From Macrostomum lignano (Eukaryota), in NCBI GenBank assembly GCA_002269645.1, contig NIVC01000278.1, positions 62,001-126,000 of the forward strand: 64,000 nt of DNA, written 5' to 3'. The notes below the pieces were generated by a model that was given only the letters and a program-made list of their open reading frames with translations, did no database searches and was not told the DNA's origin. Below, in pieces: positions 52,844 through 62,609 of this stretch (its first letter is position 1; each line of letters opens with the position of its first letter). Position numbers and translations under genes: made by a program.

Positions 52844-55800
52844 ATGGTCTCCCTGAGTCTGAGCATACTTGAGCAGCCTGCCCGCTATCACCGATTCCGT
52901 TATGAGACTGAAATTGCTGGCGGCAAACTGGGCGGCCTCTTGTACGGCCGGTCCGGCAGCAAAAGCTGCGTCCGGCTCACCCTTAGAGGCGCGGATCCCG
53001 CAGTGTGTCGCACCGTCATCGTCATTGGCGGCACCATCAGCCCAGACGGCTATCCGCATCCGTTCTACATGCACGGTGACTCCTGCGAGAGCGGCGCGTT
53101 CCAGTGGCGCCGGGACATCACGGCTGCCGATGTTGGCAAAGAGATTGAGATCTGGTTAGTGGTGCCTTCTGGTTATTTGATGATGAGGTTGTGTCTGACT
53201 CTCAGGTCTCAGCATCCTTCAGTGTCTGACTCTCAGGTCTCAGCATCCTTCAGTGTCTGAGTCCCCTCATTCAGTGTCTGACTCTCAGGTCTCAGCATCC
53301 TTCAGTGTCTGAGTCCCCTCATTCAGTGTCTGACTCTCAGGTCTCAGCATCCTTCAGTGTCTGACTCTCAGGTCTCAGCATCCTTCAGTGTCTGACTCTC
53401 AGGTCTCAGCATCCTTCAATGTCTGACTCTCAGGTCTCAGCATCCTTCAGTGTCTGACTCTCAGGTCTCAGCATCCTTCAGTGTCTGACTCTCAGGTCTC
53501 AGCATCCTTCAGTGTCTGAGTCTCAGGTCTCAGCATCCTTCAGTGTCTGACTCTCAGGTCTCAGCATCCTTCAGTGTCTGACTCTCAGGTCTCAGCATCC
53601 TTCAGTGTCTGAGTCCCCTCATTCAGTGTCTGACTCTCAGGTCTCAGCATCCTTCAGTGTCTGACTCTCAGGTCTCAGCATCCTTCAGTGTCTGACTCTC
53701 AGGTCTCAGCATCCTTCAGTGTCTGACTCTCAGGTCTCAGCATCCTTCAATGTCTGACTCTCAGGTCTCAGCATCCTTCAGTGTCTGACTCTCAGGTCTC
53801 AGCATCCTTCAGTGTCTGACTCTCAGGTCTCAGCATCCTTCAGTGTCTGACTCTCAGGTCTCAGCATCCTTCAGTGTCTGACTCTCAGGTCTCAGCATCC
53901 TTCAGTGTCTGACTCTCAGGTCTCAGCATCCTTCAGTGTCTGACTCTCAGGTCTCAGCATCCTTCAGTGTCTGAGTCCCCTCATTCAGTGTCTGACTCTC
54001 AGGTCTCAGCATCCTTCAGTGTCTGAGTCCCCTCATTCAGTGTCTGACTCTCAGGTCTCAGCATCCTTCAGTGTCTGAGTCCCCTCATTCAGTGTCTGAC
54101 TCTCAGGTCTCAGCATCCTTCAGTGTCTGACTCTCAGGTCTCAGCATCCTTCAGTGTCTGACTCTCAGGTCTCAGCATCCTTCAGTGTCTGACTCTCAGG
54201 TCTCAGCATCCTTCAGTGTCTGACTCTCAGGTCTCAGCATCCTTAAGTGTCTGACTCTCAGGTCTCAGCATCCTTCAATGTCTGACTCTCAGGTCTCAGC
54301 ATCCTTCAGTGTCTGACTCTCAGGTCTCAGCATCCTTCAGTGTCTGACTCTCAGGTCTCAGCATCCTTCAGTGTCTGAGTCCCCTCATTCAGTGTCTGAC
54401 TCTCAGGTCTCAGCATCCTTCAGTGTCTGAGTCCCCTCATTCAGTGTCTGACTCTCAGGTCTCAGCATCCTTCAGTGTCTGAGTCCCCAAATTCTGCGTT
54501 TGACTCTCTGCATTCCATGTCTGACTCTCTGCATTCCATGTCTCACTCTCAAGCATTCCATGTCAGACTCGGCATGTTTCTCACCTTCTCATCCCTCTCA
54601 TCATTTTTCACCGCTACCTAATTGCTCTTTCTGACTTTTGTTCATTTTATTTCGTTATCGTAGCGTTACATTTAGACATCTTTTTCCATTGTTTTTACGA
54701 ATAACATTAAAAATGATCATTACTCATCTGTTTGAATAACGAATTGCAGCCTAGAGAAGGTGTCCCTGGTCTGTGTGCCGCACGGAGGCAGCAGCGGAAA
54801 GCTGCAGAAGGCAATCAAGCGACGCGAAGATATTCAGTTTAATCCGTTTAATAGTGAGTTTAAATGACCTGTTTTCTGTGTGCTTGTGTGGGGAGAGCAG
54901 CCCAGCAACTGAGGATCTGAGAGGCTGGCCCAGCAACTGAGGATCTGGGAGGCTGGCCTAGCAACTGAGGATCTGATAGGCTGGCTCAGCAACTAAGGAT
55001 CTGGGAGTCTGGCCCAGCCACTGAGGATCTGAGAGGCTGGCCCAGCAACTGAGGATCTGGGAGGCTGGCCCAGCAACTGAGGATCTGGGAGGCTGGCCCA
55101 GCAACTGAGGATCTGGGAGGCTGGCCCAGCAACTGAGGATCTGGGAGGCTGGCCCAGCAACTGAGGATCTGGGAGGCTGGCTCAGCAACTAAGGATCTGG
55201 GAGTCTGGCCCAGCCACTGAGGATCTGAGAGGCTGGCCCAGCAACTGAGGATCCGGGAGGGCAGTAACTCAGCAACTGAGGATCTGGGAGGCTGGCTCAG
55301 CAACTGATGATCTGGGAGGCTGGCCCAGCAACTGAGGATCTGGGAGGCTGGCCCAGCAACTGAGGATCTGGGAGGCTGGCCCAGCAACTGAGGATCTGGG
55401 AGGCTGGCCCAGCAACTGAGGATCTGGGAGGCTGGCCCAGCAACTGGGTCTCTAGGAGGCTGGCCCAGCAACTGAGGATCTGGGAGGCCCAGCAACTGAG
55501 CATTAATCATGCATTATGTCAGTATTTTTACGCTTGTATGACTTGAGTTTTATTTCATTTGGCATTCTCATTCCCAGAGAAAATATCGGAAATGAAGTAC
55601 ACATCAAGAAACGTTCGCGAATTACGCCTGGTGTTTCAAGCATACTACATCGATTTGAATGGCAAAACTGTGCCATGCAAGGGCGCCATTGCGCAGACTG
55701 AAGTGATTTCTGACATCAGTAAGTTGAACCTTGCGTGAAAATAACAGTTGTTTTTATCGCTTATGAATTCCTTAGGCTACGTACTTTAGTGTATTATATT

Positions 55801-61026: not shown

Positions 61027-62609
61027 ATGACCAGTCTAAGCATTGAAATATTGGAACAGCCAACCAGATATCACAGATTCCGGTATGAAAAAGAAGTGTC
61101 CGGTGGTAAACTTGGCGGTCTGCTGTACGGTCGCAGCGAGAAGAGCTGCGTTAGAGTCAGAGTGTCCAACATCGATCCTCTGATGCAGAAGTCTGTGACT
61201 GTTATTGGTGGCACCGTCAGTCCAGACCTCTATCCGCATCCATTCTTCATGGTCGGTGACGACTGTCGCAGTGGCACATTTCAATTAAAGAAAGACACAG
61301 ATTCGCTTGGGGGGAAAACTGAATTTGAAATTTCGTAAGTTATGGAAATATCAAAGTGTGAATGTTTTGTAGAAATATGTCTGCTGTACCTTAAGCGACT
61401 GTCTTGTATTTTAGTGAATGGTCCATTGTGTTTAGGTTAATGGGAAAATCAGGGCGGTAAATATGGGAATTAGGACTGTGAATGCAGGAATCAGGACTGT
61501 GAATACGGGAATCAAGGCTGTGAATACGAGAATCGGGTCTGTGAATGGGGAATTCAGGGCTGTGAATATGAGAATTAGGGATGTGAATGCATGAATCAGA
61601 GCTGTGAATGCAGAAATCAAAGCTGTGAATGCAGGAATCAAAGCTGTGAATGCAGAAATCAAAGCTGTGAATGCAGAAATCAAAGCTGTGAATGCAGGAA
61701 TCAAAGCTGTGAATGCAGGAATCAAAGCTGTGAATGCAGGAATCAAAGCTGTGAATGCAGGAATCAAAGCTGTGAATGCAGAAATCAAAGCTGTGAATGC
61801 AGGAATCAAAGCTGTGAATGCAGGAATCAAAGCTGTGAATGCAGGAATCAAAACTGTGAATGCAGGAATCAAAGCTGTGAATGCAGGAATCAAAGCTGTG
61901 AATGCAGGAATCAAAGCTGTGAATGCAGAAATCAAAGCTGTGAATGCAGGAATCAAAGCTGTGAATTCAGGAATCAAAGCTGTGAATGCAGGAATCAAAG
62001 CTGTGAATGCAGGAATCAAAGCTGTGAATGCAGGAATCAAAACTGTGAATTCAGGAATCAAAGCTGTGAATGCAGGAATCAAAGCTGTGAATGCAGGAAT
62101 CAAAGCTGTGAATTCAGGAATCAGAGCTGTGAATTCAGGAATCAAAGCTGTGAATGCAGGAATCAAAGCTGTGAATGCAGGAATCAAAGCTGTGAATGCA
62201 GGAATCAAAGCTGTGAATGCAGGAATCAGGGTTGTAATATTAATCATGATTTCATATTTGCTTGCTGATTAAATTTCAGACTGGAAAAGGTGTCCCTAGT
62301 GTGCGTCCTGTTGCGGCCGCCAGACAAGCTTCAAGAAGCGGTGAACAGACGCCTAGCTATCAACTTTAATCCGTTTAATAGTGAGAATTTTCACTCAAAT
62401 ATTGTTTCGTGTCAATAGACTTTCAACGCTGGATTAAAAACAATTTTCTACTGTGTTTTTTCCAGAGGATCTCACAAGCATGTCATCGATGTATACGGCT
62501 AGAAATTTGAAACCGCTACGATTGGCTTTTCAAATATTTGTCACAGATTATAATGATGTGACAGCACCTACAAGTGCCGCTGTTTATTCAGAGGAGATCT
62601 ATGATTACA
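61027..62609 (+). CDS. Rel-homology-domain transcription factor 2 (tandem paralog; first 3 exons, gene continues past the window)
   Basis: Exons 61027-61334, 62280-62380, 62466-62609, with the same intron positions and phases as paralog 1. Motifs [26 protein letters not shown]...NPFN, LRLAFQIF, VYSEEIYDY. Confidence 0.88.
61470..62230. repeat. 21-bp minisatellite (RHD2 intron 1)
   Basis: Unit CTGTGAATGCAGGAATCAAAG. Confidence 0.97.

Follow-up and report, generated by a model that had tools for sequence, protein, structure and literature searches.

Tandemly arranged genes for short, divergent Rel-type proteins with a cysteine-free recognition loop in the flatworm Macrostomum lignano

We analyzed a 64,000-nucleotide stretch of the Macrostomum lignano genome (NCBI GenBank assembly GCA_002269645.1, contig NIVC01000278.1, positions 62,001 to 126,000 of the forward strand; the window hereafter) and found near its 3′-end two genes, gene 1 and gene 2, that encode short proteins with a Rel homology domain (RHD). 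These genes probably belong to a Macrostomum-specific, tandemly duplicated family of short (~290 to 390 aa) Rel-type factors that would bind kB sites as dimers in a thiol-insensitive manner, although our confidence in any specific biology of the Macrostomum RHD genes is much lower. Most likely, they are a divergent, lineage-specific variant of a known family, with a recognition loop that lacks Cys and a strongly diverged dimerization domain. An earlier note on the window, made from the sequence alone, had described gene 1 as a complete, intact, short RHD gene, with which our reconstruction agrees exactly in coordinates and description, and the flatworm host that it had considered is M. lignano.

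RESULTS AND DISCUSSION

Structure of the two RHD genes

Gene 1 (52844-59606) has seven exons with GT-AG at every border and intron phases of 2, 1, 1, 1, 0, and 1, and its spliced translation is a 1029-nt open reading frame (ORF) of 342 aa plus the stop codon. The RHD begins at residue 5, with the Pfam RHD_DNA_bind match spanning aa 6 to 170, and a basic motif, HKRSR, lies at aa 308 to 312 (nt 59499-59513), 30 aa before the protein ends. Gene 2 follows on the same strand and runs past the window; its exons 1 to 3 encode 184 aa, and its full-length form is the 387-aa protein P0005 (P numbers are our identifiers for the proteins compared). The earlier view of gene 2 as a diverged paralog with the same intron positions was borne out, since its first three introns match those of gene 1 in aligned position and in phase (2, 1, 1), and the two proteins are 43 to 44% identical. 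The parts of the two genes are listed below; IPT denotes the second, dimerization-type beta domain, and AF2 denotes AlphaFold2.

52844-53154, + strand: gene 1 exon 1, with the ATG, aa 1 to 103 plus 2 nt; recognition loop at nt 52883-52912 (aa 14 to 23)
54750-54853, + strand: gene 1 exon 2, N-terminal RHD (RHD-N), with the Rel-type helix-NPF motif
55578-55718, + strand: gene 1 exon 3, end of RHD-N, LRLVFQ strand, linker Lys186
56223-56324, + strand: gene 1 exon 4, start of the IPT/dimerization-type beta domain; AF2 strands at residues 193 to 214
56917-56999, + strand: gene 1 exon 5, IPT domain
59236-59407, + strand: gene 1 exon 6, end of the IPT domain; SCTLC motif
59491-59606, + strand: gene 1 exon 7, putative nuclear localization signal (NLS) HKRSR, acidic disordered 30-aa tail, stop codon
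61027-61334, + strand: gene 2 exon 1, with the ATG; recognition loop at nt 61066-61095; 100% identical to the start of P0005
62280-62380, + strand: gene 2 exon 2, from the spliced translation
62466-62609, + strand: gene 2 exon 3; the gene runs past the window, and exons 4 to 7 are present in the duplicated locus L001
62610-64000, + strand: gene 2 intron 3, with a 61-bp minisatellite up to the end of the window

The Pfam RHD_DNA_bind profile (PF00554; cutoff, 27 bits) matched gene 1 at 42.9 bits and gene 2 at 64.4 bits, and it matched 11/11 family members. Among the results of a homology search was P0001, which has 342 aa, shares 99% identity with gene 1, and is recorded as 'hypothetical protein BOX15_Mlig020664g4 [Macrostomum lignano]'; the others were eight RHD proteins, seven named M. 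lignano and one from an RNA-seq run. UniProt already lists proteins of this family as 'RHD domain-containing protein'. Recorded for M. lignano are at least nine RHD paralog types (<90% identical) of 290 to 391 aa, namely, P0001, P0004, P0005, P0006/8, P0011, P0013, P0015, P0016, and P0020.

Similarity to Rel, p50, and NFAT proteins

The reference sequences were 100% identical to the PDB chains against which they were checked (p50, 2o61_B; NFAT1, 1s9k_C; NFAT5, 1imh_C), and their loops read RFRYVCEG, HHRAHYETEG, and HRARYLTEG, respectively, as the earlier note had quoted them. Searched against PDB, the family profile found the Rel class first (E values: Gambif1, 2.9e-11; p65, ~1e-10; c-Rel, 1.6e-9; RelB, 3.5e-9), then p50 (~6e-5), and then NFAT (0.05 to 0.7). 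Profile-profile comparison by hhalign with the 11-member alignment gave 1.1e-21 for a RelA-like protein, 9.6e-16 for p50, and 2.6e-6 for NFAT1. In the Foldseek comparison of the predicted structures, the best matches were RelA-DNA complexes (E, 2e-17 to 2e-18), aligned over ~305 to 313 columns of both domains, followed by RelB, p50/p52, and c-Rel, with E values from 1e-14 to 2e-18 across RelA, RelB, p50, and c-Rel; TonEBP and NFAT1 came near 1e-13 to 1e-12. Sequence identity in these structural alignments was 18 to 21% to RelA and 13% to NFAT. The structural comparison with p50 and NFAT5 proposed beforehand thus favored neither, as RelA was best, p50/p52 lower, and TonEBP near 1e-13 to 1e-12.

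A profile search of 1.8 billion representative sequences gave 289 matches at an E value of ≤1e-3, and loops were extracted from the top 150. Nearly all of the extractable loops were of the Rel type, RFRY, and none were of the NFAT type, RAHY or RARY; outside the Macrostomum-type proteins, they were mostly RFRYxCEG. The best named non-Macrostomum matches were arthropod Dorsal or p65-like proteins, headed by a thrips Dorsal at 94 bits. Among the 30 matches whose source was looked up, the named relatives from outside M. lignano were all arthropod or annelid and none was planarian, most of the top 150 carrying no name.

The anatomy of RHD-N points the same way. The helix-NPF segment of gene 1 aligns with DLEQAISQRIQTNNNPF of p65, DVEEALRLRQEIRVDPF of Gambif1, and p50 and is gapped in NFAT, while the insert specific to the p50 RHD-N is absent, such that hhalign needs two large gaps there to align p50. 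This similarity ranking and anatomy indicate that the family is Rel/Dorsal-like and neither p50-like nor NFAT-like. The proposal of a divergent Rel-type subfamily is therefore supported, Rel being ranked first by profile, hhalign, and fold, and its description as p50-like is not, because class II Rel proteins (RelA, Dorsal) come closest and the p50 insert is missing. Membership in the p50 class is ruled out by the profile, hhalign, and fold rankings and by the absence of the insert, the glycine-rich region, and ankyrin repeats.

Recognition loop and DNA-contact residues

Within the loop, R17, Y20, and E23 are ≥90% conserved in the family, and F18 and R19 are invariant. We take R17, R19, Y20, and E23 to be the counterparts of R33, R35, Y36, and E39 of p65, which are base-contacting positions in p65 and p50. 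Outside the loop, linker Lys186 aligns in hhalign with the Lys of 'DSKAP' in p50 and the Arg of 'DNRAP' in a RelA-like protein, and KKQ or KKH at residues 246 to 248 aligns with HRQ of p50 in the trimmed multiple alignment.

The loop Cys is absent from every family member examined; at its position, gene 1 has Thr, gene 2 has Lys, and P0004, P0011, and P0013 have Ser. The next Gly is replaced by Ile or Val in genes 1 and 2, so that the earlier observation of a loop without the conserved Cys and Gly holds for both. Other loop variants in the family are RFRYLKE, QFRYKKD, and RFRFVTE. The loop had also been read as an NF-kB/NFAT hybrid on account of a His before RFRY and the E-T-E that follows. 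As the paralogs vary among T, S, and K at the middle position of E-T-E, this is one state of a variable site and not a conserved NFAT signature; the His is Tyr in P0013 and P0020 and occurs also in scattered Rel-class proteins. With Rel far above NFAT in the profile, hhalign, and fold rankings, and with such variability among paralogs at the Cys position, the hybrid was rejected.

Loss of the loop Cys has occurred elsewhere: RFRYxSE loops were found in insects, where an ant, a ladybird, thrips, and butterflies carry them in dorsal-like paralogs, as well as in the annelid Owenia. In Nematostella, natural Cys/Ser67 alleles of NF-kB differ in DNA binding, transactivation, and thiol sensitivity, with increased resistance to a thiol-reactive compound (PMC2751831). 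By analogy, it is reasonable to suppose that thiol modification would not affect the Macrostomum proteins at the loop position, and since the loop Cys is replaced, their DNA binding should resist oxidation or thiol-reactive compounds.

Second domain, basic motif, and tails

AF2 predicted two beta domains each for gene 1 and full-length gene 2, with confidence scores (predicted local distance difference test [pLDDT]) of 76 and 78, respectively. The second domain is modeled as a beta sandwich at residues 193 to 294, mostly with pLDDT of >85, and a predicted disordered tail begins at about residue 300, with residues 301 to 342 of gene 1 scoring <50. The hhalign alignment to p50 runs into this second domain as well (255 columns).

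The paralogs carry an NLS-type motif, KRSR, KRLR, or KRKR, 10 to 35 residues past the last strand. Five paralogs agree completely at K309, R310, and R312, and R312 is invariant in the family; the basic motif is a putative NLS that closes the RHD on its C-terminal side. Several family members, including the distant P0021, have an S-C-x-x-C motif (SCTLC in gene 1, aa 295 to 299, ~59379-59393; variants SCTLC, SCSHC, SCATC, ACPQC, and GCYMC) after the final strand of the second domain and before the NLS. To our knowledge, neither RelA nor p50 has a counterpart of it. The motif could conceivably have a redox or metal-related function, and a redox role would be ironic beside the loss of the loop Cys.

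Short acidic-hydrophobic motifs close most paralogs, for example, EDFMAFL, MDEFLQIV, DLSDLLTSF, DELLGTFLD, IGQLFQEVLLD, and also DLLGFLYD; they look like mini activation motifs. P0005 has the acidic-hydrophobic DEVLDDDLLGFLYD just before the NLS, followed by a Q/P-rich tail of 56 aa. The tail of gene 1 is acidic (net charge, −4) and contains neither an Ank match nor a Gly-rich run. Gene 1 lacks ankyrin repeats, a glycine-rich region, and an NFAT-type N-terminal region, as described before. The further statement that there is no activation domain is plausible for gene 1 but does not carry over to P0005, with its DEVLDDDLLGFLYD and Q/P tail, or to most paralogs, with their acidic-hydrophobic motifs. 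The label RHD-only fits gene 1, while the family overall resembles miniature class II Rel proteins.

Evidence against the Rel-type reading and alternative readings

Several results weigh against this reading of the genes as dimeric, Rel-type transcription factors. The Pfam RHD_dimer profile (PF16179) gave no match in gene 1 or gene 2 at E values of up to 10, and among the 11 family members it matched one (P0021; E, 1.4e-4). Of the two Pfam profiles that the earlier note had proposed as a check, RHD_DNA_bind matched both genes and RHD_dimer neither, and the IPT domain that it had named is missing by Pfam profile and present by AF2 fold and Foldseek. The dimerization domain is thus a prediction from structure models, whose input alignments were shallow (5 and 11 sequences). 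The 30-aa tail of gene 1 shows no clear activation motif. P0001 and P0005 had no exact-match transcript contig in the indexed assemblies, where they matched genome records only. Finally, in neighbor-joining (NJ) trees that included NFAT1 and NFAT5, these joined the Macrostomum clade with 60 to 82% bootstrap support, and since NJ attaches the family to NFAT, Rel/Dorsal orthology is not demonstrated.

The alternative that fares best concerns gene 1 by itself, which could be a p50-like subunit without an activation domain, acting as a competitor, a repressor, or a heterodimer partner that modulates activating paralogs. Gene 1 does end 30 aa past the NLS, in a tail devoid of the hydrophobic-acidic motif of its paralogs (DLLGFLYD, EDFMAFL, MDEFLQIV, DLSDLLTSF), while its DNA-contact residues are retained; moreover, possible partner genes adjoin it, and the public name suggests a common transcriptional unit. 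However, it shows no particular homology to p50, which ranks below RelA and whose insert, glycine-rich region, and ankyrin repeats are all absent, and its acidic tail (net charge, −4) could still activate. We consider this role unlikely.

The trees bear on a second alternative, in which the family is a separate ancient RHD lineage, either sister to NFAT or older than the split between Rel and NF-kB, and the loop is a true NF-kB/NFAT intermediate with a DNA specificity of its own. NJ trees with bootstrap were built from 130 or 53 RHDs with two distance measures, on the full RHD or RHD-N, and with or without NFAT. Ten Macrostomum-type proteins were monophyletic in 84 to 100% of replicates. The phylogeny suggested by the earlier note thereby gave the family a clade of its own (84 to 100%), but one attached to NFAT (60 to 82%) and not placed inside Rel; this attachment was seen with the full RHD and with RHD-N alone. 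Without NFAT, the nearest branches were thrips Dorsal-type proteins, with 35% support, and P0021 was sister to the Macrostomum family with 83%.

Besides the NFAT attachment, an ancient lineage would account for the His before RFRY and the E-T-E of gene 1, which can be compared with HRAHYETE of NFAT, and for the gap in the profile search between outside matches (≤94 bits) and family-like matches (≥112 bits). Against this, every similarity measure puts Rel well above NFAT; the helix-NPF segment aligns with RelA, Gambif1, and p50 and is gapped in NFAT; the Thr position varies among T, S, and K, and the His is Tyr in P0013 and P0020; and once NFAT is left out, thrips Dorsal-type proteins are nearest, albeit weakly supported. 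Because both groups have long branches and the distance method is simple, the NFAT attachment is probably due to long-branch attraction, which is the simpler explanation; the RHDs of Schmidtea mediterranea present the same kind of long-branch problem (PMC13563047). We therefore hold a separate ancient lineage to be improbable, slightly more so than a p50-like role of gene 1. Its boldest form, in which the proteins do not derive from Dorsal/Rel by fast evolution but make up a third ancient RHD lineage from near the NF-kB/NFAT split that was retained and tandemly expanded in early-branching flatworms, is more doubtful still. If it were true, the Cys-less HRFRYE(T/S/K)E loop would confer a specificity for DNA that neither NF-kB nor NFAT has, and the proteins would be effectors of a flatworm signaling pathway overlooked by surveys that sought canonical NF-kB only.

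Tandem array, duplicated locus, and constraint

Returning to the Rel-type family, the tandem arrangement extends beyond the window. L001, the contig that carries the P0005 gene, is a duplicated copy of the window locus, with DNA ~91 to 98% identical over long alignments, and carries four successive RHD genes of the same orientation; the first three encode proteins of 342, 387, and 340 aa (the last being P0011), and the product of the fourth is of the P0006/P0008 type. On a second contig, NIVC01000085.1, an upstream gene of >1091 aa is followed by the 342-aa and 387-aa genes in the same order as in the window, where the gene in the upstream place is the Abl-like kinase gene, and P0020, a more divergent member, lies ~100 kb off on the same contig. 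The genes had been called a tandem pair, of which tandem is right and pair too small, given that at least four genes form the array in L001 and that the family comprises nine or more paralog types. A more distant protein, P0021, was found in a Logan contig of SRR26183987 (L004; 1427 nt); it is a complete RHD protein of 417 aa with a long acidic tail and may be a less-derived relative from another flatworm.

In the L001 copy of gene 1, 7/7 exons are intact. The two copies differ at 14 nt, of which 9 are synonymous and 5 nonsynonymous, giving a ratio of nonsynonymous to synonymous substitution rates (dN/dS) of ~0.16; exons of the locus are 98 to 100% identical to L001, and the aligned flanking and intronic stretches are ~85 to 98% identical. 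The counts are small, yet they point to constraint on gene 1.

That the RHD genes are decaying or nonfunctional duplicates is hardly credible, as the large duplicated blocks and very repeat-rich genome of the DV1 line (PMC5730564), the minisatellite-filled introns, and the size and fast divergence of the family are outweighed by ORFs and canonical splice sites intact in both copies, a dN/dS of ~0.16, exons better conserved (98 to 100%) than aligned noncoding DNA (~85 to 98%), DNA-contact residues conserved across paralogs, and public gene models derived from RNA-seq. A pseudogene was ruled out by the intact duplicated copies and the dN/dS.

Transcripts and a possible polycistronic unit

The GenBank Mlig_3_7 models derive from genome-guided RNA-seq assemblies and were cut at experimentally mapped spliced-leader and poly(A) sites (PMC5730564). 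As the models have this origin, the 342-aa ORF is already part of a transcript-derived annotation. Transcript support for gene 1 consists of this public RNA-seq-derived model. A 1124-nt RNA-seq contig encodes P0003 (327 aa) as a complete, intronless ORF whose ATG is preceded by an in-frame stop, indicating that the short architecture is real at the transcript level in at least one relative. As it is 65% identical to M. lignano P0006, P0003 is probably from a congener.

Transcriptional units of M. lignano are often polycistronic precursors resolved by trans-splicing (PMC5730564). Judging by the suffix g4 of Mlig020664g4, gene 1 may stand fourth in a single transcriptional unit, and the tandem RHD genes may form one polycistronic precursor that is split by spliced-leader trans-splicing. 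AG acceptors can be read in the sequence 13 nt 5′ of the gene 1 ATG (~52830) and 5 nt 5′ of the gene 2 ATG (61021); they are consistent with the polycistronic reading, and we infer them to be candidate spliced-leader sites.

Expected mode of action

If the Rel-type reading is correct, the proteins would form homo- and heterodimers through the second domain and would bind kB-like sites through Arg17, Arg19, Tyr20, and Glu23 of the loop, linker Lys186, and Lys246/247. Nuclear entry would depend on the NLS, and the dimers would then regulate transcription, most paralogs probably as activators by means of their acidic-hydrophobic tails, with the tail of gene 1 the weakest. With Thr, Ser, or Lys in place of the loop Cys, no thiol switch would be expected. 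Dimerization, DNA specificity, nuclear import, and redox insensitivity are inferences, as would be any immune or developmental role.

Repeats in the introns and other features of the window

Most RHD-gene introns, like the intergenic spacer, have a tandem repeat of their own, and the repeats make up the bulk of the intron length (31 bp ×44, 28 bp ×21, 35 bp ×10, 1.7 kb of (TCTA/TCTG)n, 21 bp ×36, and 61 bp ×22); those without such fill are the last intron of gene 1 (83 nt) and the second intron of gene 2 (85 nt). The tracts of the locus are as follows.

53191-54482: repeat tract, period 31 bp
54900-55488: repeat tract, period 28 bp
56459-56805: repeat tract, period 35 bp
57501-59208: repeat tract, period 4 bp
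60489-60900: repeat tract, period 33 bp
61476-62228: repeat tract, period 21 bp
62671-64000: repeat tract, period 61 bp

Between the two genes, ~59740-59830 resembles a tRNA when read as the reverse complement, with segments similar to an A box and a B box. Neither ARAGORN nor Rfam made a call there, and the stretch may be a degraded tRNA-derived short interspersed nuclear element.

The remainder of the window contains the following genes and ORFs, identified by Pfam where a match is named.

5430-6410, − strand: 326-aa ORF with a tyrosine-recombinase catalytic region and DUF3504 (Pfam Phage_integrase, 2.6e-7)
14225-15339, + strand: exons of a major facilitator superfamily (MFS)/sugar-transporter gene (Pfam)
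18460-20100, + strand: DUF1759 gag-like ORF, then an ORF that runs into an (EERRG)n-coding repeat (Pfam)
22216-25217, − strand: long ORFs of 335, 117, and 136 aa; no Pfam match
25784-27448, − strand: ankyrin-repeat protein, uninterrupted 554-aa ORF (Pfam Ank_2, 6.8e-42)
30059-30577, − strand: WSC-domain ORF with a signal-peptide-like start (Pfam)
38546-49365, + strand: SH3-SH2-tyrosine kinase (Abl-like) gene, directly upstream of the RHD genes

By its sequence, the ORF at 5430-6410 looks like a Crypton-type element or a domesticated derivative, and 18460-20100 is probably the remnant of a Bel/Pao-type long terminal repeat retroelement. The three ORFs at 22216-25217 are probably parts of an uncharacterized multiexon gene. 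In the ankyrin protein, whose gene precedes the RHD genes by ~25 kb, repeats of ~34 aa (VADETxRDQCC...EVVxFLVQT) come first, and canonical ANK repeats follow at the C terminus. The long last exon of the Abl-like gene (48052-49365) is rich in poly-Gln, poly-His, and Ser.

Flatworms and the RHD family

Surveys and reviews have described Platyhelminthes as lacking the NF-kB family and most of the Toll pathway (PMC11432056, PMC4484250). A 2015 paper reported that the Toll pathway genes searched for, save Pellino, were lost from parasitic helminth genomes (PMC4484250), and in a 2024 survey, c-Rel turned up only in chordates, molluscs, annelids, and arthropods, and neither Platyhelminthes nor Nematoda yielded p50/p105 (PMC11432056). 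A 2026 paper, by contrast, described seven divergent RHD genes and a well-conserved NFAT5 in Schmidtea mediterranea, where the best NF-kB candidate had no effect on a transgene read-out (PMC13563047). The reported absence of NF-kB from flatworms, on which the earlier note had drawn, thus needs updating. In our literature search, we found no mention of Macrostomum RHD or NF-kB genes.

M. lignano branched off early within the flatworms, and transgenesis works in it (PMC5730564). An expanded and apparently constrained Rel-type family would make a flatworm Rel-type transcriptional response testable in this tractable animal, and the natural T/S/K series in the loop offers material for studying the Cys position in DNA binding and redox control. 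The novelty is limited, as the proteins are already public and short length and Cys loss each have precedents.

Comparison with known systems

The class II Rel proteins (RelA/p65, c-Rel, Dorsal, Dif, and Gambif1) are the best profile, profile-profile, and fold matches to the Macrostomum family and share with it the two-domain Rel homology region, the RFRY core with its Arg, Arg, Tyr, and Glu contacts, the helix-NPF, the linker Lys/Arg, a basic NLS directly after the second domain, and the lack of ankyrin repeats. In contrast to them, the Macrostomum proteins have Thr, Lys, or Ser for the loop Cys, Ile, Val, or Ala for the next Gly, a 2-residue loop insertion, and a dimerization domain too diverged for Pfam RHD_dimer; furthermore, they are only 342 to 387 aa long without a long C-terminal activation region, and their identity to RelA is ~18 to 21%. 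The likeness to NFAT1-4 and NFAT5/TonEBP consists of the RHD fold, the His before the first Arg, and the E-T-E of the gene 1 loop. Unlike NFAT, the Macrostomum proteins have RFRY and not RAHY or RARY as the loop core, contain the helix-NPF, lack the N-terminal regulatory (calcineurin-docking) region of NFAT1-4, the long flanking regions of NFAT5, and the loop Gly, and have the Thr in some paralogs only.

Nv-NF-kB of Nematostella vectensis likewise has a natural replacement of the recognition-loop Cys and is compact, without C-terminal ankyrin repeats. However, it belongs to the p50-like class, has a glycine-rich region, and is a single-copy gene in which the replacement is an allelic polymorphism, whereas in Macrostomum the Cys is missing in all examined members and the genes are tandemly expanded. 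The Schmidtea RHDs are likewise flatworm proteins of low similarity to canonical NF-kB with long branches and an unsettled tree position (PMC13563047). Among insects, short Dorsal paralogs such as Tribolium castaneum Dorsal2 (378 to 384 aa) have similarly little beyond the RHD, and the dorsal-like proteins of ant, ladybird, thrips, and butterfly, as well as that of Owenia, have naturally lost the loop Cys as in Macrostomum, but these arose in separate lineages, and most keep the Gly and a recognizable RHD_dimer-type sequence.

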